Sequence record: MK308676.1
Direction: 5' to 3' (one strand)
DNA length: 64,000 nucleotides
Part shown: positions 2,125 to 17,896 of the stretch, in pieces
Layout: the number at the start of each line of letters is the position of its first letter
How positions within the stretch are numbered: position 1 is the first letter of the stretch
Position numbers and translations under genes: made by a program
The notes under the pieces: model-generated
Databases searched by the model: none
The model's input: only the letters and a program-made list of their open reading frames with translations
Told to the model about the DNA's origin: nothing

Positions 2125-3549
2125 TTACAGTTGAGCAAGGTCGAATTCAGGAGCAGTCGACTTAGTCACGGTCATCTGTGTTCCGGCCCATTGCCCTAAT
2201 AGACGAACCATCGCACGAACACCAGCTTGACTACGCGTTAGCGTCTCGTCATCTTCCATGAATGCATCCATGTCGTTCAGTAACTGCAAACAAGCAGAGT
2301 TAGGAACGATTGCTACACAAACAGCTTCACGGACATATTGGCCGATGTCAGCATTTGACTGTAGGGGATGTTTACCGAAGAAACCTTGCGCACGAGCAAT
2401 ATAAGTCGGAACTTGGTCTTTCTCAACTTCGCTATGAATGTGGTTATAAAGGCCACGTTCGATTACACCTTTCATCTCTGCTACTGTCGCTAGTCGCTGA
2501 CGAGTACGCGCAGAACTTTCAATACGACGGTATTCCGCTGTATACTTAGAAGGGTCTTTCATTAGCGCTTCAGAAACACCAACAACAGTTTCACGACCAG
2601 ACGCAAGAGCTCCGATTAGTGCTTCAGCTTCACCTTCGCCATCCAACCACTTAGTGTAGTTCTTAGCGTAGACGAAAACTTCTTTGTTGTTAGAACCGTT
2701 AGGAATGATAAACTTACCAGACTTGTTGAACTCCGTTACGTGACGGATTTGGTCAGCTAGACGGTTGCCGAAGTAAGCACGTGCTTTTGCTAACTCTGTA
2801 CGTTCATGTACAGTGATGTCGTTTAGAGAGACGTTAGTGAACGAGTTGTTCAATAGCGCATCTAAGAACAGGAAGTTCAATAGATTGATTGGTGAGTTAA
2901 ACATAGCCGGAGAGTTAGACTCGGGCTGTTCATTGCGCAATAGGATTTCAGATGCAGTAGTGAAACCTAACAGGTTAGCACCTTCGCCCATTGCTTGCTT
3001 GATACCGGTGTTCCAGACTTCGTTACCGCGCTTAAGTCCTTCGAAAAGAAGGTCGTCAGTTAGACCACCAAGAATCTTAGAGCGTAATGGGCCACTAAGT
3101 TCTACAGGACGGAATGCGCCAACACGATACTTTTCATACATCGTCGCTAGTTCAGGAGATGTGAAAGTAGGAAGAACGGCTACAGAACGGATACCGATGT
3201 TAAGAGGCGAATCGCCTTCAATTGCACGCTTAGCGTTTTCACAATCACCAACGATTGCCCTGACTAGCGGATTAACAACAGTACGTGCCATCTTCAGGTT
3301 AGCGGATGCACGGTTTGCCATAAGTTGAGCTACGCGACGCTTCTCACCGGTGTGAGGGTCAAAACCTACGTTGATAGGCATAGCTGCTTGGCGTACTTGG
3401 TCAACGACAGAATCGTTTTCCATGAATGCGTTTAGAGAAGAATGCACGAGGTCTAAGTGAGTGTTTTGGTTTAGGCTCAACGTGATGTTAGACGCTGCCA
3501 AACTTGTACCTAGTTGCATCGCGGCTTCTAGTGACTTATCCTTGAACAT
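2125..3549 (-). CDS. virion head protein, positional equivalent of phiKZ gp177 / SPN3US gp243
   Basis: 474-aa ORF; synteny between the protease block and vRNAP beta. Confidence 0.6.
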   Translation of the reverse strand: MFKDKSLEAAMQLGTSLAASNITLSLNQNTHLDLVHSSLNAFMENDSVVDQVRQAAMPINVGFDPHTGEKRRVAQLMANRASANLKMARTVVNPLVRAIVGDCENAKRAIEGDSPLNIGIRSVAVLPTFTSPELATMYEKYRVGAFRPVELSGPLRSKILGGLTDDLLFEGLKRGNEVWNTGIKQAMGEGANLLGFTTASEILLRNEQPESNSPAMFNSPINLLNFLFLDALLNNSFTNVSLNDITVHERTELAKARAYFGNRLADQIRHVTEFNKSGKFIIPNGSNNKEVFVYAKNYTKWLDGEGEAEALIGALASGRETVVGVSEALMKDPSKYTAEYRRIESSARTRQRLATVAEMKGVIERGLYNHIHSEVEKDQVPTYIARAQGFFGKHPLQSNADIGQYVREAVCVAIVPNSACLQLLNDMDAFMEDDETLTRSQAGVRAMVRLLGQWAGTQMTVTKSTAPEFDLAQL

Positions 3550-3712
3550 TTGCTTTCTCCGAGATTACGATATGTAGTTCTTGTGAGAAGATTGCTTCCA
3601 GCTCTTTCATGTCAGAGCCATTCAAATCGTTACCCGCAAGTTCTTGAATTGCGTCCGTACAGACATCAATCGCTGTAGCGGCTACAGCAACATTCTGAAG
3701 TGCAGTAGTCAT
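3536..3712 (-). CDS. 58-aa hypothetical protein missed by the ORF track (MTTALQNVAVAATAIDVCTDAIQELAGNDLNGSDMKELEAIFSQELHIVISEKANVQG)
   Basis: GGAG RBS; ATG 3712; stop overlaps the start region of the 474-aa gene; helical acidic composition. Confidence 0.65.
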   Translation of the reverse strand: MTTALQNVAVAATAIDVCTDAIQELAGNDLNGSDMKELEAIFSQELHIVISEKANVQG

Positions 3713-3816
3713 GTTTATACTCCAGGGTTAGAGCGCCGCTTGTTGCAGCGTTTATTGAAAAGTTTCGATGTGCCCTCTATATAAGGGCTCATCTTATTTG
3801 TCCTTTAAGGAGGGCA

Positions 3817-6357
3817 TTACCCCTCCGAAAAGTACATGTCTACCAACTGCTGGTTCTTCTTACGAACAACGGCGTTGATAACACCTTGTGAAATACATGA
3901 GGTTACGATACGGTTGTTTACAGATTGCGCACCGAAGACTAAGTCGATATCGCGACCATCTTCCGTTCTGTTAATGCCTTCCATGATACGACCGTGTACA
4001 GTTTTAAGCTGATTACTAACAACCGACTTATCGCCGATACCTGATTCGAGTTCGCTATCGATGTAGACCGAAATAACAACCTTACCAGGAATAACTTTCT
4101 CACCAGCAACGTAAGTAGGCTTACGCAATTCGCCAGTACGGCCAGCAGCGCCGCGATTAAGGTCACGGCTTTCTTCTGCACGGCGAGCATTGTCCGCTTC
4201 AACGATTGCTCGTAGGGATTCGCTCATGTCGTCTATGTTACCCATGTAGAAAACTTCGATGCGAGTTACAACGCCACCCGTTTTCGCTTTAGGTGTTTGG
4301 TTAGAAAGTTTGCTTAACGCAAGAAGCGAAGCGTCAGTCTGCTCAAGTCCGGTTAGAGTACCTTCCTTGATTGTGCCCAAGATAGTATCGAACTCTACTT
4401 CTTGACCAACCGTTACCAACCCTTCAATCTCTTGGTCGAAGTCCAGGATAATGCCTTTATTCTTAGAGATGCGAGTAGATAGTTTCTTACGGAAGTTCTC
4501 AGAGATAGCCGAACCATCTTCTAACGTATCGTTACCTTCTTTAAGTACAACTGTTGCCAGTGCACCAGAAAGCATAGACACGTTTTCAGGAGCAGTTAGT
4601 TCACGAGCAAAGAAACCGCTGTTCCATGCTAGAACCCAACCTTCTTCAAAAGTACTACCAACAACTTTATCGGTTACATATTCATGCGGAATGAGTTCAC
4701 CTGCTACGCTACCGTGTTTAACACCTAAGCGATACCCTTCTTCACGGCCACTTGCGTATTTAACGCGAATGACTTTATCTGTAACCTTAGTTACTTCCCC
4801 AGCTTCTTTCGCACGGTAAACGAAGAACTCAGAAACGCGAGATGCGATAATTGAATCGTAACCAGAACGATAAGGCATTGGGTGAGAACCCGCAGTAGGA
4901 ACAACGGCTGATTGTTGTACCGCACCCAAGTTAGCACGTTTACCGTCATCGCGGTCCATGTCTGGGAACAGAAGTGCCGTAGTAGATAGCAGCGCTGAAG
5001 AACCATCTTCAGGCGTCCAAGTGCCCGCAGTACCACGTAAGTCGTTGATGCGCGCGTTAGGTGTAGCGAAACCACGGATACCTACTTTCGCAGAGTCCGG
5101 AGTGTGCTCACTAAGGATACCTAAGTCGTTCTCGTGGAATACACGGTTACGTTTAACCAGTGTACGTGCCGAACGTCCGCCTTCACCTGCTAAGGTAATA
5201 GCTTCCTGTTCTTTAAGGTTGTGAACTGGGTTGACTTCACTTACTAGCTGAACAGAACTGTCCGCATTCAGACGGTTACGTAGTTCAGAAGGCATTAGCG
5301 TTATAGCTTCGTTGCGAGAGTTAGGCATACGACGCTGAGCAGCAATTGCTTCATACATCGCCAAGTAAAGAAGACCACTGATACGTTCCATGCCGCGAAC
5401 GCGCATGAATTTAGGGTCAGCTTCATCGGGAGCATCGTCTGTCTTAATCAATTCACAACAGCGAATGAACAAGTCAACTAGGTTGTCAGGTTCTTTCATG
5501 TCAGCCAATACTTCTAACGTAATCGGGTCTAGGAACAAATCGTTCATTAGAGTCCAGTTATCAGCATGACCTTTGTTTGCTTTATAGTAAGGCAGTGACA
5601 CTACCCAACCATCGCGACGGTTAAAGTCGGACACGTTAAAGCGACGTGTCATTTCTTCCATGTCTTTTAGGCCAGACCAAATCAAAGATTGCATCGGGTC
5701 TTTAACGTCGACATAGAGACGTTCATCTGCAAACGAGATAACGATTTCATTCTGCAAGGCTTGAACTCGGCGGTCCAAAGGTTCCCAACGGTGACGCACT
5801 TTCAGTTTACGCAATAGCTTATCCAAGCCTAGCGTATAACCTAAGAACATAACCACAGGAATCTTGCGGTTCAATGAACGGAAGATAGCTACGTCAGATG
5901 GAGGAGTCCCCCAACCGCCGCCAGTAAGCTCTAGGATGGAACCACCTGCGCTCTTAGGAACGTTAACGGTGTTATCCATATTCATTGTGATGATGGCACC
6001 GTCGTAAGTACCACAGACAACAGCACCGCTGCGCTCAGCATTGGCAACTGCTTTCTCACCGTAACGCTGCTCACGCTTCTCATATTCGAAGTCGAACTTG
6101 TAAGCACCAGAATCAAAGCCACTGATTTCACTCATGAAAGAAGTGTAGTGACGTGGAAGTGGAACGTTCGGTATTTTGTTTGTACCATAGCGCAGACTAG
6201 TAACGCGGTCGTCGCCGTTGGTTAATGCAGCAGCAGAGAAAGCTTTACGTAACCAACGTCCTTGGTCATGTTTAGCTAGCTCGCTACGGCTAATGAAGAC
6301 TTTACCTGCGTAAGAAGTTAGAGCAGCCTGGTTAGGCTTAGTCTTACGGATTGGCAT
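3817..6357 (-). CDS. rpoB: virion RNA polymerase beta-like subunit (phiKZ gp178 family), exon 2
   Basis: Beta motifs GEGGRS..., SEHTPDSAKVGI, DDGKRANLGAVQQSAVVP and GDKSVVSNQLKTV; joins exon 1 in frame (QKVD^MPIRK), spliced product 1308 aa. Confidence 0.92.
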   Translation of the reverse strand: MPIRKTKPNQAALTSYAGKVFISRSELAKHDQGRWLRKAFSAAALTNGDDRVTSLRYGTNKIPNVPLPRHYTSFMSEISGFDSGAYKFDFEYEKREQRYGEKAVANAERSGAVVCGTYDGAIITMNMDNTVNVPKSAGGSILELTGGGWGTPPSDVAIFRSLNRKIPVVMFLGYTLGLDKLLRKLKVRHRWEPLDRRVQALQNEIVISFADERLYVDVKDPMQSLIWSGLKDMEEMTRRFNVSDFNRRDGWVVSLPYYKANKGHADNWTLMNDLFLDPITLEVLADMKEPDNLVDLFIRCCELIKTDDAPDEADPKFMRVRGMERISGLLYLAMYEAIAAQRRMPNSRNEAITLMPSELRNRLNADSSVQLVSEVNPVHNLKEQEAITLAGEGGRSARTLVKRNRVFHENDLGILSEHTPDSAKVGIRGFATPNARINDLRGTAGTWTPEDGSSALLSTTALLFPDMDRDDGKRANLGAVQQSAVVPTAGSHPMPYRSGYDSIIASRVSEFFVYRAKEAGEVTKVTDKVIRVKYASGREEGYRLGVKHGSVAGELIPHEYVTDKVVGSTFEEGWVLAWNSGFFARELTAPENVSMLSGALATVVLKEGNDTLEDGSAISENFRKKLSTRISKNKGIILDFDQEIEGLVTVGQEVEFDTILGTIKEGTLTGLEQTDASLLALSKLSNQTPKAKTGGVVTRIEVFYMGNIDDMSESLRAIVEADNARRAEESRDLNRGAAGRTGELRKPTYVAGEKVIPGKVVISVYIDSELESGIGDKSVVSNQLKTVHGRIMEGINRTEDGRDIDLVFGAQSVNNRIVTSCISQGVINAVVRKKNQQLVDMYFSEG

Positions 6358-7848
6358 CTACTCTCCAACCACGGAGAGCAGGACTATATCATGTCTTTCA
6401 TAATCTGCGAGAGATTAATCAGACCCTACCGTTTCGGCTTGCGCCTACTCTACTCGGTTATTCCCAGTAACATCGCTGTTAAAGGTATCCTTTCGATAGT
6501 CTCTGAACTCATCCCGTATCTTTCGACTTAGGGACTTCGTTGCGTCGGTCACTTCCTCGGCTAGCGTTTTTACCGTGCTTCTCACTTCCATTACTGGGAG
6601 AAGTATTACAGTGCGTTTCTGCCTGTAAGTGGTAGCTAGGGAGTTATAGAAGATTCCCGCAGTTAGGTAGGTTTATAGTGGACATGTCTTGTAAAAAGAC
6701 TTTGTATTAAAATGTTTACTAGGTAAGGAACATCACTAACTTACTCAGCAAAGAACTCATCAAGTATTTCATCGACGGTTCGCTTGTCGAAACAACTTAT
6801 AGTTAATTGAGATAAACCCATTTCTTTAACCAAAGCTAGTTTCTCTTTATCCCGCTTAACAGTCCCTAGGTGGCCTTCTAAGCCGCCAAAGCGTTCTACG
6901 GGTACAAAGTGTTGTTTACCGTGAAACTCTATCATTAGAGCTTGTTCAGGGACGTAGAAGTCCCAACGGTATTTGTAATCTGGAAATGAGTATTCTGGGA
7001 TATACTTCTTACCGTTTCTTTCCAACCAAAGCCTAACTTCTCTTTCACCGATGCTTTCTTTGCAGCGAGGACAGCCAGCTTTAGCTTGTATATGTTCAAG
7101 GGGCGTTTTAGTAAACTCGCCATGAATGGGACAGTTAAGAGTAATCTTAACTCTCATTCCTTTATAGTCTATGACGGAATAGTCAAAGGCATCGCCGTGT
7201 ATTTCTTTTGCTTCCCGAACAAAGTCTTCTTTAGGACGCATCATGGTTTCATCTGAACAGCGCTTACAGCCGTAACCCTCTAGGAAAGAACTCACTCTCT
7301 TAGTGAATGGGCCGTGGCTTTTGCATTCAAGCTCAATTACGTCATCGGTATTGCCAAACGTGACGTTGCTAAGGTCATACGTGTCGCCAAACAACTCTTT
7401 GGCTTTCTGTAGGAACGCTTCTGTACTTAAACGCGTTTCTGCCATGGCGCAAATAAAGCACTTGGTGTCGCGCATGTGTTCGGCGGGCCTAGGAAAGAAC
7501 GGCCCGTGGTCAGGACAAATGACTTTGACCGGACAGGTAGAATTAATAAACTCTACTTCGCTGTAGTCGTACTTACCCTTATGAATTCTTTTACTTTCCT
7601 CTAGGAAATCGCTAACATGTAAAAGAGCACCAGAACAGTAAGGACAGCCTTTAGACCTAGGCCTGGTTAGGTTACCGGGAATAACATCCCAGTCGCCATG
7701 TTTCTTGCACGTAACTGTGCAAGGGGTCTTGTTGTTTATGTAAACAAGCTTTTCAAAAGTAAACGCGTCCCCATAACGCTCTTTTACTCTTCTTATGAAA
7801 GCTTGCTGTGGTGTGATGTTTTGTTTCATTTTAATACTTAGGATTTTA
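6358..7848 (-). mobile_element. group I intron (1491 nt) in the vRNAP beta gene, endonuclease ORF in the P1 loop
   Basis: Exon ends in U and intron ends in G. P element AACUGCGGGAA (6654-6664), R GUUCAGAGACUA (6497-6508), S AUGAUAUAGUCC (6381-6392), P3 CCUACC/GGUAGG. IGS CAU-GUCCACU (6677-6686) pairs 7 bp with exon AGUGGAU including the U.G wobble, and with the 3' exon AUG. Confidence 0.93.
6741..7829 (-). CDS. intron-encoded homing endonuclease: four CxxHG...CxxC (DUF723-like) repeats plus a C-terminal Vsr/DUF559-like PD-(D/E)XK nuclease
   Basis: Four repeats of F...K..HG..YDYS.V.Y....V...C..HG.F...P..H....GC..C, then ESIGE...WDFYVP...IEFHGKQHF; start moved to ATG 7829 inside the intron (362 aa). 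Confidence 0.8.
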   Translation of the reverse strand: MKQNITPQQAFIRRVKERYGDAFTFEKLVYINNKTPCTVTCKKHGDWDVIPGNLTRPRSKGCPYCSGALLHVSDFLEESKRIHKGKYDYSEVEFINSTCPVKVICPDHGPFFPRPAEHMRDTKCFICAMAETRLSTEAFLQKAKELFGDTYDLSNVTFGNTDDVIELECKSHGPFTKRVSSFLEGYGCKRCSDETMMRPKEDFVREAKEIHGDAFDYSVIDYKGMRVKITLNCPIHGEFTKTPLEHIQAKAGCPRCKESIGEREVRLWLERNGKKYIPEYSFPDYKYRWDFYVPEQALMIEFHGKQHFVPVERFGGLEGHLGTVKRDKEKLALVKEMGLSQLTISCFDKRTVDEILDEFFAE

Positions 7849-9234
7849 ATCCACTTTCTGAGCATCCATGGTGTAGCGAACGCCACCCATGGTGAAAGTA
7901 CCATCTTCATGAAAGACAGGAACTTCGATTTCAAACGTAGCTTCTTTACCATCAACTGGAAGAAGAGTGATGCGAAGTAATTGAGTTTCTTCTAATGCAT
8001 CCGCTACGATTTCAGATTGGTAATCGCGAAGAATGTAACCGCCTCGGTTAAGAGACAAGAACACGTTCGCAATATCTTTCTGCATTACATCAGAGACATA
8101 CTTGCTACGCATCTTAGCAATGGTAGATTTCCTGGCGTGCTCTGGAACAACGTTATCGCCGATAGGCACTTTAAGGTCGTCGTCGTAAGCGATGTCTTCC
8201 TTAGAGACTTGGGCGTATTGTTGTAGTGGTTGGTCTGAGAAAGGAGAATCGATTCGAGCAATGTTACCGATAGCTTCAGCATAGCGACGTTGCTGTGCTT
8301 GAGTTAGTTGACCTGCTTCAATCTTTTCTTCTAGTTGGCGTTGCAAACCTTCCGGAATAAGTTTACGAGCTTCACTCTCTGAGATAGTAACAGTTTCATT
8401 TTCCATCTCAGCTGCTTCTTCTTCATCAACCGTCAAGGTAAGCATTAGCTTTTCCAGTAGGTCGTGGAACTTAGCAGCAGCACGGTCATCGGTATCTGCG
8501 TGATAGAACAATGTTTCTACCGGCAGGAATACCGCTTTAGTGCCGACAGTAATAACGAAGACAACATCGTCTGCTTCAATCTTACCAACAATTGAATCCA
8601 CGCCGCTCATCGCACGATAGATTTCTAGAACCCATTGCATCGCAGGGTCACGGAAAGCATCACGGTATTGAGCTTGTACTTCTTCAAGGTTAGCTTTGAA
8701 TACAGCTTCGGTTTGCCAAGTGTTGCCTAAGTGAATCTGAAGGAACTGAGGACGTGTACCGCTGAACAGGTTCATGTTAGCGACAACAGTCTCGGCCATG
8801 TTAGCCCAGTAGTCTTGATAAACCGTCGGAGTCTCACCGTAGCGCGCCATACGAGGTACAAGAGTGTAGTCTGCTACAATCATGTCCTTTTCATCCATAA
8901 GGTCACGCTGGACGTTACGGGTGCGTTTTACGGTAGGAGTGTTAGCGTAGTAGTCTTTAATGTAACGACCGCTAGAGAACTGAACACGACGAACACGGCC
9001 ATGCTTGAATACGCCTTCTTCAATGAAAGAGTGACGGATTCGGTTAGGCCAGTTAACTGCCAGCAGACTGTCAGCTTTAAAGCCTCGGTCTTCAGCTGAA
9101 AGGGCCGAATGGTGAAGGATAGGCTTCTTAGGTAAAGTAATACCAATGAGGTCTACGAGCGGTGCTTGAGATAAGGCAAGATTTTCTCTTGCCCCGTATT
9201 CTCGGATAAATGCGTTTAAATGTAATAAAGACAT
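7849..9234 (-). CDS. rpoB: virion RNA polymerase beta-like subunit, exon 1
   Basis: Ends in GTFTMGGVRYTMDAQKVD, aligning with bacterial beta [20 protein letters not shown]; the TAA is the first codon of the intron. Confidence 0.88.
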
Positions 9235-9250: not shown

Positions 9251-9424
9251 TTAATCGTCGCCAGTCATGAAATTCAGAACAAGGTCTGACACGTCCGTGG
9301 TGATTGGGTAAGTTAGACCACCCGATGGAGAAAGGTAAGATGAAGAACGGGCTAACATCTCATCGATTTCTTTAACAGCATCGTCACTCGTAACCACGGT
9401 AAACGAAAGCGTATCGCCATCAAA
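9251..9424 (-). CDS. rpoC: virion RNA polymerase beta'-like subunit (phiKZ gp180 family), exon 2
   Basis: Begins FDGDTLSF, completing the catalytic GADFDGD motif after splicing; preceded by the intron terminal G at 9425. Confidence 0.9.
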   Translation of the reverse strand, partial: FDGDTLSFTVVTSDDAVKEIDEMLARSSSYLSPSGGLTYPITTDVSDLVLNFMTGDD

Positions 9425-9848
9425 CAGAATCTTCAACAGTATCGCTAATACTGCCCTGTTTATTAAACAGCTCCGGGTCTCCCCGAATGCTGAGACTATA
9501 TAATCACCCTCGTAAACTGTTACCGCTTATGAGGGGCTCCCCGTTTCCATTTAAGCCGTTAGGCACCCGCTTGGGCCGTACTCTACTCACTTCCCCTAAG
9601 CTATGTTGGGCTTAGGCTATCATCCCCTAAAGGCTTTCTCTTTAGGTTAAGCTTTCGATAGTCGTTGAACTCATCCCATATCTCTTAATAGACTTAGGGA
9701 CTTCGCTGCGTCGATTTTCTCTATTCTCAAGGTTTTCACTTTTTAAACCTGTCATTAACAGTTGTCACTTATCTGTGTTTCCACGATAAGGCAGTACTTG
9801 AGACTTTACAAGAACTTCCCGCAATTAGAGGAGTTTATTTTCTACACA

Positions 9849-10796
9849 TTACTGCGTAGGCGGACTTATGTCCAATGGTGTAAAGGTATGGTCTCTGTAA
9901 GAGCCTTTAGAAACAACGCTTCTCTGTAGCGCAGCTATGCCATTTAAGTCAGGAAAAAGTTCTTTCCAAACATCGGATAAGCTACGGTAAAGAGTACGTG
10001 TTTTGTCTGGAGCAGTCACCCAATACGGGCGTATGTTACCGCGCATAGGGTTAGACCAGAGTTCTTCTTTGGACCAAGACTTAAAGACTACGGTCTCATC
10101 GCCTTTAATGCGCATGCTCCATCCGTTTAAAGGATAGTTAGACTTTTCTGTTAATCTACGCTTAATTGCGTTTTTGTCAGCAGAAAGAAATCTACGTATT
10201 TTAGACTCAGTAGGAAATTCTAAGACTTCCTTAGTTTCAACATTGTAAAGCTCAAAACCAGAACTAGCAGGACGCATATAAGCTTCCCTATTGCCGGCAG
10301 ACACATCATCCCATGGAGTTTCATCTGTCAGCAGCTTTGCAAGCCATCCTCTTCCTAGAATGCCATTAGCTAAAAATTTAACTCGATGGCTATCGGAAAG
10401 ATTGCGTTCTTTTAAAAACTTGTTGAAATTAGAATAGATGACCTGGTTACCGCTAGGGTCCCGAATAATAACATCGCCCCATCCGTCCTGCCTAAGAAGA
10501 GTATCCCAAGCATGCTGTAGGTTGGATGTCTGCGTTGCCCATTCTAAGTTGTCTAAATCGTAGTTGGTTTTATCGCCGTCCTTATGGTTGACGATGTGTT
10601 CCTCACTAGGCTTATCAGGACCATAGAGTTCCATGAGCGCCACGTGAAGTCTAACGTTCTTGCCGTAATAGGCAAGCTTAAAGTAAATGTAGTCATCTGA
10701 ACCTTTCCAAGGCTTTAGATAAGTTTTGGAGATTTCACTGTAACATTTACCATCTCTTTCAAAAAGGTAACCTTTTAAATTTCTGTAGACTTTCAT
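9849..10796 (-). CDS. intron-encoded HNH homing endonuclease (I-HmuI-like HNH with C-terminal DNA-binding repeats)
   Basis: RLHVALMELY...VNHKDGDKTNYDLDNLEWATQTSNLQHA motif; AAGGAG RBS. Confidence 0.88.
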   Translation of the reverse strand: MKVYRNLKGYLFERDGKCYSEISKTYLKPWKGSDDYIYFKLAYYGKNVRLHVALMELYGPDKPSEEHIVNHKDGDKTNYDLDNLEWATQTSNLQHAWDTLLRQDGWGDVIIRDPSGNQVIYSNFNKFLKERNLSDSHRVKFLANGILGRGWLAKLLTDETPWDDVSAGNREAYMRPASSGFELYNVETKEVLEFPTESKIRRFLSADKNAIKRRLTEKSNYPLNGWSMRIKGDETVVFKSWSKEELWSNPMRGNIRPYWVTAPDKTRTLYRSLSDVWKELFPDLNGIAALQRSVVSKGSYRDHTFTPLDISPPTQ

Positions 10797-10821
10797 ACTA
10801 ATCTCCTTGTATAAGATTAGT
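10797..10821 (-). promoter_or_regulatory. RBS-sequestering hairpin upstream of the HNH gene
   Basis: ACUAAUCU-UAUACAAGG-AGAUUAGU immediately before the AUG; perfect 8-bp stem overlapping AAGGAG. Confidence 0.65.
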
Positions 10822-10854
10822 CGAAGTCACATCCCATTGGAGGACATATTGTTA

Positions 10855-12306
10855 ATCCGCACCTAGACCGCTTAGCATGTACGGAGACACACTCATTGTA
10901 TCAAAGAACGCTAGATTGTTGGAGGTGTCAGGGAACTCAACCGCACGGTTATCCGTCGGAGCCCAAGACTCGTCTAACTCAAGTAAGTTCAAACCACTGA
11001 CGGTAGTCTTGATGTAAACTTCTGAGGCGTAAATAGACGAAAGACCAGTAACCGGATAACGGGTACAGAATGCACGCGAGCGTGGCACTAAGTCCTTAGA
11101 AAGAAGATAGTACATCTCTGCCCAACTCATTGGGCGCACATTCGCAGGTTCCCAACCATCTGGCAATTCATCAATGGATTTCATAATTTTGTAATATTTG
11201 TCATCCTGATAAATCAACCTTAGGAAGTGGCCATCGATGGTTACAGGTCGATGTCTTAGTGTGGCATCGGCAAAACCGTTTATCATGTTTTCTAGACCAT
11301 CAGAGGTCAGCCATTTTTCACGGACTTTATCCGAGAGGCTATGATAAACTGTTTTCAAAGTCTTGCGGTCCACTAACGGTACTTCATATTCGCCTTCCGC
11401 ATACATGTCGGAAAGGAACAGACTACGGAAAGCATATTCGGTTAAGTGAATCTGCGTTGCCTTCATGAACTGGAACAGACCAACCATTGTAGTGTTTAGG
11501 CCAGGCTGTCTTTCATCGCCTAATACTTCACTACCTACATCCATCGAACTCAATACGTTACGTGTAGAGCCCACGATGCGACGAGAAGCAAACTTACCTT
11601 GCAGTAGACCTTTCTTACCTTCCAGCATTTGGAAGATGTAATCATAGATTGCTGTAATATGGCGCTGCATAGATGCTTTGGCTTCATCGAGCAATTCTGA
11701 GTTACGAGATTCAAAGTCTACGTTAATGGTGTTTGAAACAGAAATCACTTTACGGTAAAGGTCATTGATTTCTTCTTCTTTAGGTTGTCCTTCTTCGGTC
11801 AGTTCGATATCGCGAAGACCAGCAGGGATTACGATGATGCGTTTAACGAAAGCTTGCTGACGATATTTCTCAAGCAAGTCAATGCGTAAGTCACGCTGTT
11901 GGGATTTGTTACGCTTAAAGATAAGCTTAGGGAAGTGACGTAGGAAAAAAGCAAAGCCAGTCTCACCTGTCATGATGTCGGAACGAACGAAGTCATTCTC
12001 GGCTTCATCAAACACAGCGTAAGCTTGACGGGTTAGAATCTCATTGTACAGCTGTTTAAGCGCAATGAGTTCTTTATAGTAAAGAGGATGAAAGACAGGA
12101 ACCTTCAAGTTAATGAAACCTTCTTTCTCATCACGTGCTTCTTCACCCTGCTTGCCGAAAACGACATTGGAGTAAAGCCCTTGAGGATGGTAATCGCCGT
12201 GACGCCCTTCATAGAGCTGACCTGTTTGCACGGGCAACATACCAGCGTATGTGTTAGGTATGTCGGCTAGGAAGTCGATATTAAAGGGTAGTCGTTTGAT
12301 TTTCAT
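10855..12306 (-). CDS. rpoC: virion RNA polymerase beta'-like subunit, exon 1
   Basis: Beta' motifs DYHPQGLYSNVVFG, VIPAGLRDI, GKKGLLQGKFASRR and TRYPV; ends GLGAD; start at ATG 12306 (AAGGA RBS); spliced product 541 aa. Confidence 0.9.
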
Positions 12307-12403
12307 GTGGATTCCTTGCGTCGAATCTTTTGAGTCGCTAAACAACGGGGACGCCCGTAGCGACAGATTTTTATTCTTTCATTGTTCTCCGGAGAACAAA
12401 ACC

Positions 12404-15400
12404 ATGGCTGATGAAAACTACACACTAGATGACCTAGACTCGATAATTGCGAGTTTAGATGATTCTTCTGTGCCATCGAACCCAGACCCTCAGGAACTGG
12501 GTACGCGACAAGTCATCGAGGCTGTCGCTGCCGGGTCTTTTGATAGCATCAAAACCCGCGACAATTTGGCAAAGTATGGTGCAGCTATAGCCAAAGCAAG
12601 TTTACCCGAAGGATACCGTAATGCGGTTGATAAGGTAGACGATAGTGCGTCTTCTATTATAGACCTATACAATGACTCGAAGAAGGTTTTAGAAAAACCG
12701 TTAGCCGAGCTAAGAAAGGCTGTAGCAGCACGCGCAGACAACCTTCCGGACTTCTTATCCGAGAGTACGAAAAAGTCTATTAAGGACTGGGCAAATACGC
12801 CTGCTCCTGATAAAGGACCTTCTCGTGCAGACATTGACTACGACCAACTAAGAATCGATGCGGCCTTCCAATCTGTATTTGGCATGCAGCGCGGTCAAAT
12901 GGAACAGAACCAAGTTCAAAGTCAACTGCAAGAAGTTCAAGCACAGAAAGACGATTCCTTCCAACGTTCCTCTCTAGTGGCCAGTGACGGCATGCTAGAC
13001 CAGTTAGGAAGACTCGTAGGTTACAACGACACTATCAATTTCCGCTACCAGCAAAAGACATTGGAGCTACAGCACCTACAGTACTTTGCACAGCGTGACT
13101 TATTGAAAGTGTTCTCAGCGTACGCCGAAGATACAGACGTACAGCTGGAAGCGATTATCCACAATACTGCTTTGCCTGAATTCCAGAAGGTGAAGATGTC
13201 TGAAGGTTTCCGTGCGGTTCAAGCACAGAGACTTTACGGCAACATCGGTGAATCTCTCGAAGAGTACCGTGACCAGTATTTTGGCGATGTGATGACTAAC
13301 CTGAGACAGAGAGCTGACAAAGTTGCTCGTGATGTCGCAGGCGGCATTCAAGGCGTAGCCACAGCCCTTCAGTCGACGGAAGGTGTTTCGGACGGCCTGA
13401 ATGCTCGAGATAAGATTGCAGTGGGTGCCGGCGTAGCTGCCGATTATGCCGCTGAACAACTTAGTCCAGCTATCGGAAGAAAAATCCGTAAGCTACTCGA
13501 GTCTAACCCAGCAATCGCTAAGAAGTCCAATGAGCTAATGTACATCTTTGAGAATGCTCCTTCGATGTTCAACCAAGCTCTTAAGGACTGGGACGGTAAA
13601 GTATTCCCAGAGAGCGTTCTAAAGCGCATACCGGCGTTAGAACTGTTAAGCGCTAACTTCATTAAGCGTGAACTACAAAGCCTCTCTCCGTCCTCTCCAG
13701 ACGCTTCTATTAACTTAGGCAATGACTTCACTAACAGAATGTCAGACCCAGCCGTTTATTCTGAAATGGCTCAGAAGTCAATTGTCGAAATCATCCCTGG
13801 GCTTCTATCTCGTCAGTTAGCTGAACTCGAGATGATTCGCACAGGCGAGTATGCCGAACGCTTAGTTTACAATCCAGGCCAGCAAGGCATGGTGCGTATC
13901 TCAGACTTAGCCTCACAGGCTAACGAAGAAGCTTTCTTAGGCACAGGGCAGCGTCGTAACAAATACACTGACGCCTTGGTTAAACTCCTAGGTTCTGGTT
14001 CAGGAGTTCAGTTAGATGACGAAGCAACGCGTGTCCTTAAAGATACATTGCTACAAGACGCCATAGGCGGTCGAGTCTTTAACATCAATGACCTGGCCCG
14101 TCGTGATTTCGGTAACGATGAGATTACGGCTCAAATCCAAAACATGATTCAGAACTCTCGTGGCGATGACGCGAAGCGTAACCTAACAGGTGCCCGTGTA
14201 AGTCGTGAGTTAGTACGTGGTCAGCAACAGCTGAATAACGTTATCAATACGTTCGCGGAAGCAGGTAACCTAGACGTACTGAGAGAGATGGGTCTAATTG
14301 CCGTAGATGAATACGGTAATGTAAAAGTAAGTGAGGAGTATGTCAATACGGCGTCTCGAGAAGAGAACGTCCAAGGGTTTAGCCGCACTTTCAATAGTTC
14401 GCCTTCAATGGCAGGTATGGAAGACGCAGCGAAGACGGTAGATGAGTTCTTCTTCCAAGACATCGCCGGGCAACGAGCTATTCCGGTAGCTATCGTTAAT
14501 GACGGCATGTCTGAAACGTCTCCTCTCTTCCAAGTAACAAAAGAAGGTTTCGATTCTCAGATTAGTTTGTTAGATGCTTTATTAGGGGCAACTCTAAGAG
14601 CAGGACAAACAGAGCAGGAATCTTCAGCAGGCACAGAACGTCGCGGTAAGTGGTACGACGGTGCAACTAAGTGGTTGAGTCCTAGCGCAGTAATGGGCGG
14701 CTTAGCAAACTTCACAACGGCATGGTATAATGGCGTCTCTAATTTCACGCGCACTGGAGCGGACATCGTAGGTAACACTTTCAGCGGTGGTCTTAACATG
14801 CTTCGCGGTGGAGGCGGCGATAAAGGCCCTAAGGCAATCGACATTTACGTCGAAGGTCGAAGTGAGCCTATTCTGCTGGCCCGTGACTTACGAGCAGGTA
14901 TGTATGTCGATGCTGAAACTAAGAACCCTATCCGCGTAGTTGAAGACATCACTGGCCCAGTAGAAGACCTAGATGGTAACGTTGTTATCAGCGAAGTTGA
15001 CATTGAGCGAGGTCTTTATTCTAAGACAGGTGAGAAGTTCGGCATCTTCGGCGCAGCGGCTTCAGGACTTAAGAACGTCACAAACCTACAGCTTAGTGCA
15101 ATCGCTTCAATTGCGAAAATGCCTGGTGCCTTCATTAAAGGTATAAATAGCAAAGTTCGCGACATTTATGTTCGCGGGGAAACTACACCTAGGCTGTACG
15201 CTAACCTAATGAAAAATGGTGCCTACTATTCTCATGCAACAGGTAAGCGAATCTACCATCCAGACGAGATTGACGGAGAAGTCAAAGACATCGACGGCAA
15301 TACAATCGTGTCAATGGAAGATATCGGTCGAGGCTTAGTGGATAACCTAGGTACGCCTATTGGCGGCAGTCGGCTGGCTCAAGTAGCTAAGAACGTCTTG

Positions 15401-17896
15401 TTCGGAACGGTTAACTTTGGTCGTAACTTAGTAGCATCTAGTTTTGAATTCGGTAACCGCACAATGGCGGGAGCATACAACCTAGCCGAAGGCGGCCTCA
15501 GTGCTATCGCTGGTTTAGGTGGAACGAAGAACTACTACGAAGGTACAGGACAGGAAGATACTTTACAGGACATCTATTCTTACATGCAAGCGCGTTGGCC
15601 TCTTATGGATGGTCAGACCGTTGAGCCTGTAGGTGCCAGCGGTCTCTTCGGGGATACGGATGGTGACGGTGACCGTGATGGTAGCTTCCAAGATATCTTT
15701 GCAGAAAGGGCAGCGCGTGGCGATAACCCAGAAGGCCCAGCTCCGGCAGATGTAACTACGGGCGAGAAAGAAGGCAACGAAGGTAAAGGACTGTTCGGTT
15801 CTATGCTCGGCTTGTTCTCGAGTATCTCAACAGGCATCGGTTCTCTTATAGAGGGCATCGGTGGCATCGGTAGCTTATTGGCAGGATGGTTCGCTTGGAC
15901 TAAAGGCGCAGACGCAGCGGAAGCAGCGGGTGACTTTGCAGGCGATATGCTAGATGGGGAAGATGGCAAGAAAGGACGCAAACGCGGCCCTCGTGGTGGC
16001 GGTAAGAAAGGCTTCTTTAGGAAGCTACTCGGTAAAGGCGCGTCTCTAGTTTCTAACATCGGCTCTAAGGCAGGTACGTTTGCAAGAGCAGCAGCTCCAG
16101 TTGCATTGGCTGTTGGCCGTAAGGCAGTAACAGCAGCAGCTTCAGCGGTCGCTACAGTAGCAGGTGCGCCAGCGGTTGGTACAGCCATCGCGGCAGCGGG
16201 CATTGCTTATACGGGCTACCAAGCTTACAAGTATTTTGCACGCCGTGCTGATGTGGAACCTATCGAGAAACTCCGTTATCTACAGTACGGTATTAACCCA
16301 GACATCACAGACGACCTTGTAGCGATACGTTACTTGGAAGACAAGATTATGAGTTATGTTTCTTGGGCAGGAGATGAACCTCGTTTAGACATTCCTTTGA
16401 AAGAAGCGGTGGAAGAATGGGCAGAAGACTTCGGCGTAGACCTTTCTAACGAAGGGCAGGTAACACAGTTTGCAACATGGTTCGCTAAACGCTTTGTTCC
16501 CGTACTGATGACGCACTTGCATGTGGCGCGTAAGATTGATAAGTCAATCGACTTGTTCGATATTGATGACGAAATCAGTCCTAAGCAAATCCCTGACTTT
16601 GTTCGTGGCGTTTCATTACGTTCTGCTTATAGAACTAAACATGACCCACTGAGCGTTATGGTATCTCCATTCCCTGGTCGCTTAGTTACGGCAGACACAG
16701 TTGCAATTCAAGCACTAGCTGATGCTCTTATTGCTAAACATGAAATCGATAAAGGTAACATGGCCGATGTCGAAGAAGTGCCTAACAAGGACATCGTCGT
16801 TGGAGCATCTTCCGCAGAAATCTCCGCACGTCAAGTGAAGGCGATGGAAGACCAGAAAGCCAAAGCGCAAAGAACTCAGGCAGCGGCAAACCAAAGCGGC
16901 ACGACAATGACCAATATGGAATTGCGTCGTACGGCAAACGCAGCAGGGGTAAGTACCACAATACTAAACGCAGCAGCTCGAGGTACCACGGGAACCTTCC
17001 GCCTCATCATGCCTATGGAAGGAAGAATCTCTTCCCCTTACGGTATGCGCGTGCACCCTATGCAAGGTACACGCAAGATGCATAAAGGTGTGGACATTGC
17101 GGCTCCTGAAGGTACTCCGGTACGTGTGGCAGCAGACGGCGTTATCTATCGTAAGTACTATTCTAAGTCCTACGGCAACGTTATCTATGTTTCGCACTCT
17201 AACGGTAAGGCTACTCGCTACGCGCACATGTCTCGTTTCGAGCCAGGTTTAAACATCGGTTCCGAACTCAAAGCAGGTCAGGTAATCGGTTACTGTGGTA
17301 ACACGGGTAAGTCTAAAGGTGCACATCTTCACTGGGAACTTCGAATAGGTACAGGCCAATGGGCTGATACTGAAGACCCACTGAAGTACGTAGACCGAAG
17401 CGTAGCTCGTGACCTAGCTAAGGAAGAGAAGGCCATCCTTAAAGATGAGAAAGAGTCAGATAAAGAAACAATGGACACTACCCTAGAAGGGCTAGAAACC
17501 ATTCGTTCTACTCTTGTTCCGCCTCCGAAGGAATCTGCGAAGGAAGCACAAGAACGTAAGTCTGCTCCTCAGTCTTCTCAAGAAGCTCTAGCCAACCGAG
17601 AACGTACTCGTGCTCCTCAACGAGAAGCCGAACGTGAACGTAAGGCAGCAGCAGCGAGCCAGAAAGCCCTAGCGAAAGCTATGGATGAACAGGCAACCGA
17701 AGCTAAGACTGCAACAGGTCAGCGCGAATCCATGATTGAGTTACTGGAAACCATGAACGCCACTATGGAACGAGTAGCCGTCGCATTGGAAGCTGAACCT
17801 AAGATGGCAACGTCTGGTCGAGCTACTACCGTACCGTCCCCTGAGCAATACAAACGCAGCACTACGGTCTCACCGGCCGTAAGCATGAAAGGTTAA
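12404..17896 (+). CDS. large tail protein (phiKZ gp181-like tape-measure/cell-puncturing protein) with a C-terminal M23 peptidase
   Basis: GGAGA RBS before ATG 12404 (1830 aa); helical Ala/Gly-rich body; HKGVDIAAP...YAHM...GAHLHWE M23 motifs at about 16998-17350; divergent from beta' as in phiKZ. Confidence 0.82.
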   Translation: MADENYTLDDLDSIIASLDDSSVPSNPDPQELGTRQVIEAVAAGSFDSIKTRDNLAKYGAAIAKASLPEGYRNAVDKVDDSASSIIDLYNDSKKVLEKPLAELRKAVAARADNLPDFLSESTKKSIKDWANTPAPDKGPSRADIDYDQLRIDAAFQSVFGMQRGQMEQNQVQSQLQEVQAQKDDSFQRSSLVASDGMLDQLGRLVGYNDTINFRYQQKTLELQHLQYFAQRDLLKVFSAYAEDTDVQLEAIIHNTALPEFQKVKMSEGFRAVQAQRLYGNIGESLEEYRDQYFGDVMTNLRQRADKVARDVAGGIQGVATALQSTEGVSDGLNARDKIAVGAGVAADYAAEQLSPAIGRKIRKLLESNPAIAKKSNELMYIFENAPSMFNQALKDWDGKVFPESVLKRIPALELLSANFIKRELQSLSPSSPDASINLGNDFTNRMSDPAVYSEMAQKSIVEIIPGLLSRQLAELEMIRTGEYAERLVYNPGQQGMVRISDLASQANEEAFLGTGQRRNKYTDALVKLLGSGSGVQLDDEATRVLKDTLLQDAIGGRVFNINDLARRDFGNDEITAQIQNMIQNSRGDDAKRNLTGARVSRELVRGQQQLNNVINTFAEAGNLDVLREMGLIAVDEYGNVKVSEEYVNTASREENVQGFSRTFNSSPSMAGMEDAAKTVDEFFFQDIAGQRAIPVAIVNDGMSETSPLFQVTKEGFDSQISLLDALLGATLRAGQTEQESSAGTERRGKWYDGATKWLSPSAVMGGLANFTTAWYNGVSNFTRTGADIVGNTFSGGLNMLRGGGGDKGPKAIDIYVEGRSEPILLARDLRAGMYVDAETKNPIRVVEDITGPVEDLDGNVVISEVDIERGLYSKTGEKFGIFGAAASGLKNVTNLQLSAIASIAKMPGAFIKGINSKVRDIYVRGETTPRLYANLMKNGAYYSHATGKRIYHPDEIDGEVKDIDGNTIVSMEDIGRGLVDNLGTPIGGSRLAQVAKNVLFGTVNFGRNLVASSFEFGNRTMAGAYNLAEGGLSAIAGLGGTKNYYEGTGQEDTLQDIYSYMQARWPLMDGQTVEPVGASGLFGDTDGDGDRDGSFQDIFAERAARGDNPEGPAPADVTTGEKEGNEGKGLFGSMLGLFSSISTGIGSLIEGIGGIGSLLAGWFAWTKGADAAEAAGDFAGDMLDGEDGKKGRKRGPRGGGKKGFFRKLLGKGASLVSNIGSKAGTFARAAAPVALAVGRKAVTAAASAVATVAGAPAVGTAIAAAGIAYTGYQAYKYFARRADVEPIEKLRYLQYGINPDITDDLVAIRYLEDKIMSYVSWAGDEPRLDIPLKEAVEEWAEDFGVDLSNEGQVTQFATWFAKRFVPVLMTHLHVARKIDKSIDLFDIDDEISPKQIPDFVRGVSLRSAYRTKHDPLSVMVSPFPGRLVTADTVAIQALADALIAKHEIDKGNMADVEEVPNKDIVVGASSAEISARQVKAMEDQKAKAQRTQAAANQSGTTMTNMELRRTANAAGVSTTILNAAARGTTGTFRLIMPMEGRISSPYGMRVHPMQGTRKMHKGVDIAAPEGTPVRVAADGVIYRKYYSKSYGNVIYVSHSNGKATRYAHMSRFEPGLNIGSELKAGQVIGYCGNTGKSKGAHLHWELRIGTGQWADTEDPLKYVDRSVARDLAKEEKAILKDEKESDKETMDTTLEGLETIRSTLVPPPKESAKEAQERKSAPQSSQEALANRERTRAPQREAERERKAAAASQKALAKAMDEQATEAKTATGQRESMIELLETMNATMERVAVALEAEPKMATSGRATTVPSPEQYKRSTTVSPAVSMKG

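Follow-up and report, generated by a model that had tools for sequence, protein, structure and literature searches.

A predicted group I intron encoding an HNH endonuclease splits the DFDGD motif of the virion RNA polymerase beta' gene in Vibrio mediterranei jumbo phages

Jumbo phages of Vibrio mediterranei very probably carry a mobile-type group I intron of 1430 nucleotides (nt) that is spliced out to join two exons of an RNA polymerase gene and that harbors the gene of a homing HNH endonuclease resembling I-HmuI. The element occupies positions 9425..10854, on the minus strand, of a 64,000-nt stretch of sequence record MK308676.1 (hereafter the window, numbered from its first letter). The region is 100% identical in four phages of ca. 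290 kb each, vB_VmeM-Yong XC31, XC32, MS31 and MS32 (hereafter Yong), and window positions are converted to those of record MK308674.1 (Vibrio phage vB_VmeM-Yong) by adding 123,999. In GenBank every gene of the region, including exon 1 and the HNH gene, is a "hypothetical protein" and the intron is unannotated. Exon 2 is listed as a separate coding sequence (CDS) for a 61-amino acid (aa) hypothetical protein, QAX96130.1, which is the kind of mis-annotation as a short open reading frame (ORF) foreseen in an earlier reading of the bare sequence (hereafter the original prediction).

The intron was delimited by searching the two exons separately against reference profiles and homologues. Exon 1 (10855..12306, minus strand; 484 aa, ending LGAD) matched positions 1–484 of the 539-position profile PHROG 2986, described as 'RNA polymerase beta subunit', with E 2.3e-161. 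Exon 2 (9251..9424, minus strand; 57 aa, starting FDGDTLSF, with codons to 9254 and the stop at 9253..9251) matched positions 485–538, and the two exons jointly covered positions 1–538 of the profile without gap or overlap at the junction. In tblastn of the window with two uninterrupted homologues, from phages sm033 (549 aa) and BONAISHI (555 aa), the alignments broke at residues 492|493 and 495|496, respectively, both equivalent to 10855/9424. In these two Vibrio phages, which represent the empty site, the protein is continuous and reads LGAD|FDGD; the identity of exon 2 to homologue C-termini was 55–56%. At the nucleotide level, GGT GCG GAT ends at 10855 and is followed at once by an in-frame TAA (10854..10852), constituted by the first three bases of the intron, which would stop ribosomes at the splice site. 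The intron ends in TTCTG, with its last G at 9425, and TTT GAT GGC GAT begins at 9424. The 9425–10854 boundaries put forward in the original prediction are thus exact to the base and in phase 0, and the proposed split of the motif as GAD|FDGD is confirmed by both the sequence and the uninterrupted homologues. A UAA or UGA is found at the equivalent place in phiKZ and in loci L014, L019, L026, L045, L054, L061 and L077 of the survey described below.

The interrupted gene was identified as a homologue of phiKZ gp180, in agreement with the original prediction, because PHIKZ180 was the sole phiKZ match of exon 1 (E 1.6e-91) and because its neighbors are those of phiKZ, with a PHIKZ178 homologue as the next gene downstream and, upstream, a divergent gene of the gp181-like tail/lysin type. 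The family of the non-virion paralogue, PHROG 2987, scored only 28 bits. Gp180 of phiKZ, a subunit known to be catalytically active and packaged in the phiKZ virion, is treated as the carrier of the DFDGD motif (PMC10612078). As judged from these comparisons, the interrupted gene is that of the beta'-N subunit of a virion-packaged polymerase, whose packaging and activity in Yong are presumed by analogy with phiKZ.

Inside the intron, Rfam family RF00028 matched 9877..9471 over the full model (positions 1–253) with 69.9 bits, above the gathering score of 50 (E 4e-17), and was the sole Rfam family over threshold within the window. The ribozyme core (9471..9877, minus strand) comprises P2 to P9, with P7 and P3' separated by two additional hairpins. 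A large insertion at this place, the P7.1/P7.2 pair, is typical of subgroup IA. In a core alignment of Yong with an IMG/VR relative, the second intron of phage pir03 and the BONAISHI intron, 30 of the 77 predicted pairs still pair despite changes on both sides, a count that derives from four related introns only. The 3' tail (9425..9470) appears by inspection to contain two small hairpins, P9.1 and P9.2, followed by the terminal G. The boundaries are canonical, with a U preceding the 5' splice site and the terminal G abutting exon 2. The RF00028 score over the full model, these boundaries and the P1 pairing described below bear out the original assignment to group I. The intron, real and unannotated, is in the style of subgroup IA. 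The Rfam scan also returned a weak snR82 match under threshold, which was disregarded.

Helix P1 is predicted to form between GCGGAU at the end of exon 1 (10855..10860, minus strand; 5' splice site after the U at 10855) and the internal guide sequence GUCCGC (9860..9865), which gives 6 bp including a U.G wobble. The guide falls within the Ser-Pro-Pro codons that end the HNH gene. Hairpin P2 (9842..9859; 7 bp, loop GUAA), assigned from the Rfam alignment, the sequence and its equivalent in locus L012, contains the HNH stop codon (9851..9849) in its loop. The guide was fixed by homology: L012 and L013, the IMG/VR loci whose host gene is closest to that of Yong (71% aa identity), have an ORF-less intron of 498 nt at the same site. 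Homology between the Yong and L012 introns (82% over 387 nt) starts exactly at GUCCGCC (9865..9859 in the window), a sequence located, in L012, at 23 nt from the 5' splice site; the same P1 appears when the natural L012 intron is folded to minimum energy (z = −3.6). With the 5' splice site on one side of it and the guide so fixed on the other, the HNH gene (10796..9849) is placed in the P1 loop. The layout is the same in phiKZ, where the GUCC element is likewise found within the end of gp179.

The HNH gene (9849..10796, minus strand; 315 aa plus stop) is preceded by a Shine-Dalgarno-like AAGGAG (10803..10808), 6 nt upstream of the start codon, that may serve in translation initiation. Its product matched Pfam HNH_3 with 37.4 bits (cut-off 24.8; 1.9e-09), so that the claim of an HNH gene inside the intron is upheld, and several HNH families of PHROG, including 59 and 959 (HNH endonuclease). 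Residues 10–96 align with I-HmuI (PDB 1U3E), with H71, N83 and N92 identical, and the HNH_3 catalytic core spans residues 51–92 (10521..10646). Like the Yong protein, I-HmuI of Bacillus phage SPO1 is encoded in a group I intron of an essential phage gene, and the two share the conserved His and Asn residues along the N-terminal ca. 90 residues. However, the match is weak (E 0.0012), and I-HmuI has 174 aa and resides in a DNA polymerase gene, whereas the C-terminal two-thirds of the 315-aa Yong protein are uncharacterised. A Pfam match to the CUT domain in this C-terminal region was under threshold and was disregarded. Identity of the Yong protein with phiKZ gp179 and pir03 ORF30, its distant kin, was 25–26%.

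The distribution of introns at the DFDGD site was analyzed in three sets of sequences. A search with the phiKZ gp180–gp178 segment matched 47 phiKZ-like records, and allelic states were read from the 45 listed. A clean empty site was observed in 33 of these 45, in which the span is shorter by exactly 1443 nt, the length of the intron, at ca. 97.5% identity; at least ten records contain the intron with its HNH gene and at least two a version ca. 960 nt shorter. A homing element classically passes through occupied, ORF-less and empty stages. All three allelic states are seen among phiKZ relatives, whereas for Yong only the occupied state and, in a relative, the ORF-less one are known. In IMG/VR, 80 loci with gp180 homologues were surveyed among the matches listed, beyond which there were 64 further homologues. 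About a quarter of the loci (21/80) are interrupted in or beside the motif, a result that answers the proposal in the original prediction to survey gp180 homologues for introns at this codon. RF00028 scored above the gathering score in 11 of 15 interrupted loci scanned, twice in L014, and once in L077 in a separate scan. Insertion points in the virion beta' gene are staggered, four or more being found: D|FDGD in the majority, including Yong and phiKZ; one base past D|FDGD in L029; DFD|GD in phage pir03; and DFDGD| in L015/L016, L071 and L037. Among isolates, 60 of 289 records were sampled at even intervals, and judging from the match ends, the alignment stopped at residues 492–500 of the uninterrupted query in eight of them, namely Yong, fMGyn-Pae01, U1B, PDCC-1, EL, GXNNE2, PS1 and VP4B.

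Locus L014 (5456–7350; IMG/VR UViG_3300031933_000228) contains two group I introns (RF00028 60.5 and 68.9 bits) that flank a 12-nt micro-exon, UACGACGGCGAU, whose only coding content is YDGD, from the catalytic loop; the first intron has an open frame of 357 aa.

Sequence identities were then compared between introns and their flanking exons. The Yong core is 82% identical to that of L012, versus 58–66% for the flanking exons, and is 74% identical to cores located at other sites, in the neighboring gene of pir03 and BONAISHI. This contrast fits a transfer of the intron between genomes and between sites, to which a stronger constraint on the ribozyme could contribute. The original prediction also held that the endonuclease would cut at active-site codons that a competitor can hardly mutate. 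This holds for the amino acids only, since third codon positions around the site match Yong in only 10–50% of 50 distinct intron-less alleles, and since in phiKZ silent changes, as well as escapers with D changed to A, G or Y, were protective against gp210 of phage phiPA3 (PMC11620839).

Combined, these observations suggest the following model. In the primary transcript, the exon end GCGGAU would pair with the guide GUCCGC ca. 1 kb downstream, and the intron would be removed by two transesterification steps, the first initiated by guanosine, leaving the exons joined in one frame of 541 codons. Translation of unspliced transcripts would halt at the TAA, yielding a product short of two of the three catalytic aspartates. 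The HNH protein would be expressed from the P1 loop through its own ribosome-binding site and, by analogy with its family, could nick intron-less alleles near the insertion site in mixed infections, repair then copying the intron into the cut allele (homing). The boundaries, the ribozyme core, the identity of the host gene, the family of the endonuclease, the P1-loop position of its gene and the presence/absence polymorphism among relatives come directly from the data, whereas we infer splicing in vivo and both the activity and the target of the endonuclease; for cleavage of intron-less alleles, the polymorphism in phiKZ relatives is indirect support. A complete DFDGD loop must be made, because the gene is essential in this phage family and the phage was propagated.

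Several facts weigh against this model. The guide is 989 nt away from the 5' splice site and within coding sequence, and a local 4-bp hairpin, GGAC-AUAA-GUCC (9862–9873, minus strand), ties up part of it and competes with P1. Rfam placed its P1 on this hairpin, which has no equivalent in the ORF-less L012 intron; it mimics P1 and might delay or regulate its formation. P10 would comprise only 2–3 bp. No RNA run was found in a search of public sequencing runs for the stretch; one public run (X1) contained short, low-depth, DNA-type contigs of a relative ca. 90–97% identical, in which both exons, the HNH gene and the core are represented but no junction is bridged. A long-read transcriptome of phiKZ did not reveal splicing at gp179 under its conditions (PMC10914365). 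Finally, the four Yong isolates are identical at the intron site, and an intron-less allele of the Yong phage is not among them.

Other explanations were weighed against these data. Were there no splicing, the gene would be truly split, and a 484-aa polypeptide ending GAD would assemble with another of ca. 57–61 aa starting near FDGD. GenBank does list two separate CDSs, a TTG at 9436 could start the second, and RNA polymerase subunits of jumbo phages are divided elsewhere (PMC7598289). However, what separates the two parts is exactly a complete, well-scoring ribozyme whose U and G boundaries are canonical, the frame is single and continuous in close and distant relatives, the break would fall within the metal-binding loop, and a start at the TTG would append four residues from intron sequence, all of which makes a split gene extremely unlikely. 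A different folding of the intron would use as guide a nearby GUCC (10845..10842), which can form with GGAU at the splice site a small local P1 of 4 bp, including a U.G pair, with a 9-nt loop, and would leave the HNH gene between P1 and P2, outside the P1 loop. This is improbable, given that the proximal GUCC offers only 4 bp versus 6 for the distal guide, that the distal GUCCGCC corresponds by homology to the guide in the ORF-less intron of L012 and keeps the usual spacing to P2, and that nine further introns of this site, including that of phiKZ, have a GUCC-type element immediately ahead of P2, a tenth (L045) having GUUCC.

Two further alternatives accept splicing and differ from the proposed model in the role of the endonuclease. 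The ribozyme might work in an element that is immobile, the HNH protein being inactive, retargeted or decaying and the intron a vertically inherited, fixed passenger. We consider this possible but not likely. It would agree with the frequency of ORF-less introns at the site (L012/L013, L026, L054, L056, L061 and L065, and the phiKZ relatives OMKO1 and fMGyn-Pae01), with the low identity (25–32%) among the HNH proteins found there in Yong, pir03 and phiKZ, and with the uniformity of the four Yong isolates. By contrast, the 315-codon frame is intact, with a ribosome-binding site and the catalytic His and Asn kept, pieces of the HNH gene are also present in the relative of run X1, and the similarity to L012 is far greater in the core than in the exons, suggestive of transfer after divergence of the host gene. 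Alternatively, the endonuclease could serve mainly as a weapon against co-infecting relatives, disabling their virion polymerase gene, by analogy with the action of phiPA3 gp210 on phiKZ. The precedent was described in this same family of phages (PMC11620839), the targeted gene is essential, and Yong encodes a chimallin-like shell protein, so that the same nucleus-based biology may apply. But the precedent concerns a different gene and site, the many third-codon differences around the site in related Vibrio phages make recognition of a given rival uncertain, and cleavage, import into the nucleus of the rival and fitness effects are presumed by analogy; we regard a main role as weapon as rather unlikely.

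Comparison with known systems places the Yong intron closest to that of phiKZ gp180/gp179. This intron interrupts the same gene at the same boundary, LGAD|FDGD, with TAA straight after the 5' splice site: gp180 ends LAPLGAD followed by TAA, gp179 is an HNH_3-type protein encoded upstream of the core and 25% identical to that of Yong, and RF00028 scores 92 bits between gp179 and gp178. The phages differ in host genus as well as in this low identity of their HNH proteins. Blastn of the Yong intron against the phiKZ and pir03 introns at the DFDGD site revealed no similarity. The prediction of the phiKZ gp179/gp180 introns is attributed, in passages of PMC10914365 and PMC11512511, to Mesyanzhinov 2002 and Ceyssens 2014. 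On sequence grounds, the Yong intron is a further example of this known kind, with phiKZ interrupted at the same codon boundary. In the phiKZ reference sequence (L010, NC_004629.1 181000–190500), gp180 is annotated with 490 aa, ending LGAD, and there is no CDS for a 62-aa exon 2 (FDGDTVSF...) between the ribozyme core and gp178.

The original prediction had invoked phiPA3 gp210 as precedent, which stands as regards an HNH-bearing intron in an RNA polymerase gene and fails as regards subunit and site. The phiPA3 element resembles that of Yong in being a group I intron with an HNH nicking endonuclease, inserted in a virion RNA polymerase gene at conserved codons of the catalytic region (Birkholz et al. 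2024). However, it interrupts the beta subunit (gp211/209, homologue of phiKZ gp178), after two Asp residues equivalent to RpoB D675, rather than the DFDGD motif of beta' (PMC11620839), and the gp180 homologue of phiPA3 is uninterrupted. Its type of site is used by BONAISHI (HDDG|) and not by Yong, and phiKZ gp180/gp179 is the closer precedent. The statement that introns occur in RNA polymerase genes of jumbo phages, including AR9, agrees with the literature: in AR9/MarsHill-like phages, polymerase subunit genes, among them that of the non-virion beta'-N, are reportedly disrupted by introns (bioRxiv 10.1101/2020.12.14.422802). Unlike Yong, these phages infect Gram-positive hosts and belong to a different lineage. 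The T4 introns of td, nrdB and sunY, of subgroup IA, resemble the Yong intron in three ways: additional hairpins separate P7 from P3', the intron opens with a stop codon, and a peripheral loop houses a free-standing endonuclease gene. The T4 genes are located in other loops and encode mostly GIY-YIG enzymes. By contrast, the Yong gene is in the P1 loop, hence the distance of ca. 1 kb between guide and splice site.

The Yong genome contains further introns of this type. A second predicted group I intron of 1491 nt (6358..7848, minus strand) splits the gp178 homologue at KVD|MPIRK into exons 7849–9234 and 3817–6357, with TAA right after GAU. It was mapped with sm033_165, residues 1–460 of which match 9228..7849 and residues 461–1298 match 6357..3865; its RF00028 score, 43.3 bits, is below the gathering score. 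It encodes an endonuclease of 358 aa (7817..6741; PHROG 559, 681 and 9084), of which GenBank calls only 234 aa, and a related intron and gene are present in pir03 at the KVD|MPIRK site. Outside the window, at ca. 72266–74093 of MK308674.1 (minus strand; locus L092, ca. 2767–4594), the non-virion beta' gene (PHROG 2987, QAX96059.1) is split at NADFD|GD by a third group I intron, which scores 53.8 bits with RF00028 and contains an HNH gene of 449 aa (QAX96058.1). Both beta' paralogues of Yong are therefore interrupted in the same catalytic motif. In phiKZ, gp55/gp56 are split at N|ADFDGD. BONAISHI has, in the gap between ORF25 and ORF26 (L005, 11533–12032), an ORF-less intron of 500 nt that splits the gp178 homologue after HDDG, in the same conserved Asp-Asp region as the phiPA3 gp210 intron; its RF00028 score of 37.9 bits is below the gathering score, and its core is 74% identical to part of the first Yong intron.

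Two genes upstream of the non-virion beta' gene, MK308674.1 encodes a 634-aa protein, QAX96061.1 (76333–78237, minus strand; L095, 134–2038), whose full length matched PHROG 4795, 'nuclear shell protein' (E 1e-31). Yong probably builds a nucleus of the phiKZ type. When the C-terminal half of phiKZ chimallin was searched against the Yong record there was no match, and pairwise BLAST was not significant. A joint reading of these data, which we offer tentatively and with little confidence, is that the DNA encoding DFDGD in both beta' paralogues is a shared homing battlefield of phiKZ-like phages, with at least five staggered insertion points, unrelated introns and divergent HNH proteins, and that the endonucleases double as weapons. 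The P1-loop layout may be tolerated, in this reading, because transcription and possibly splicing take place in a ribosome-free protein nucleus and translation elsewhere, keeping ribosomes apart from P1.

In this phage family, self-splicing introns have repeatedly landed in the few codons of the Mg-binding loop. With all stages of the homing cycle present among close relatives, the DFDGD site provides a convenient natural system to study intron homing and phage–phage competition, and extends such study beyond the single published case of phiPA3 and phiKZ. For annotation, the intron was missed in both the Yong and the phiKZ records, exon 2 being missed as well in phiKZ, and both the four Yong records of GenBank and the phiKZ reference show a truncated beta' subunit, two catalytic aspartates short; the spliced product is the proper input for comparative or structural work on these polymerases. 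Beside exon 1, the divergent gene (12251–17896, plus strand) encodes a 1881-aa protein with a tail-fibre-like N-terminal part and a peptidase/endolysin-like C-terminal part (PHROG 3201, 6700 and 16615), and its position corresponds to that of phiKZ gp181.

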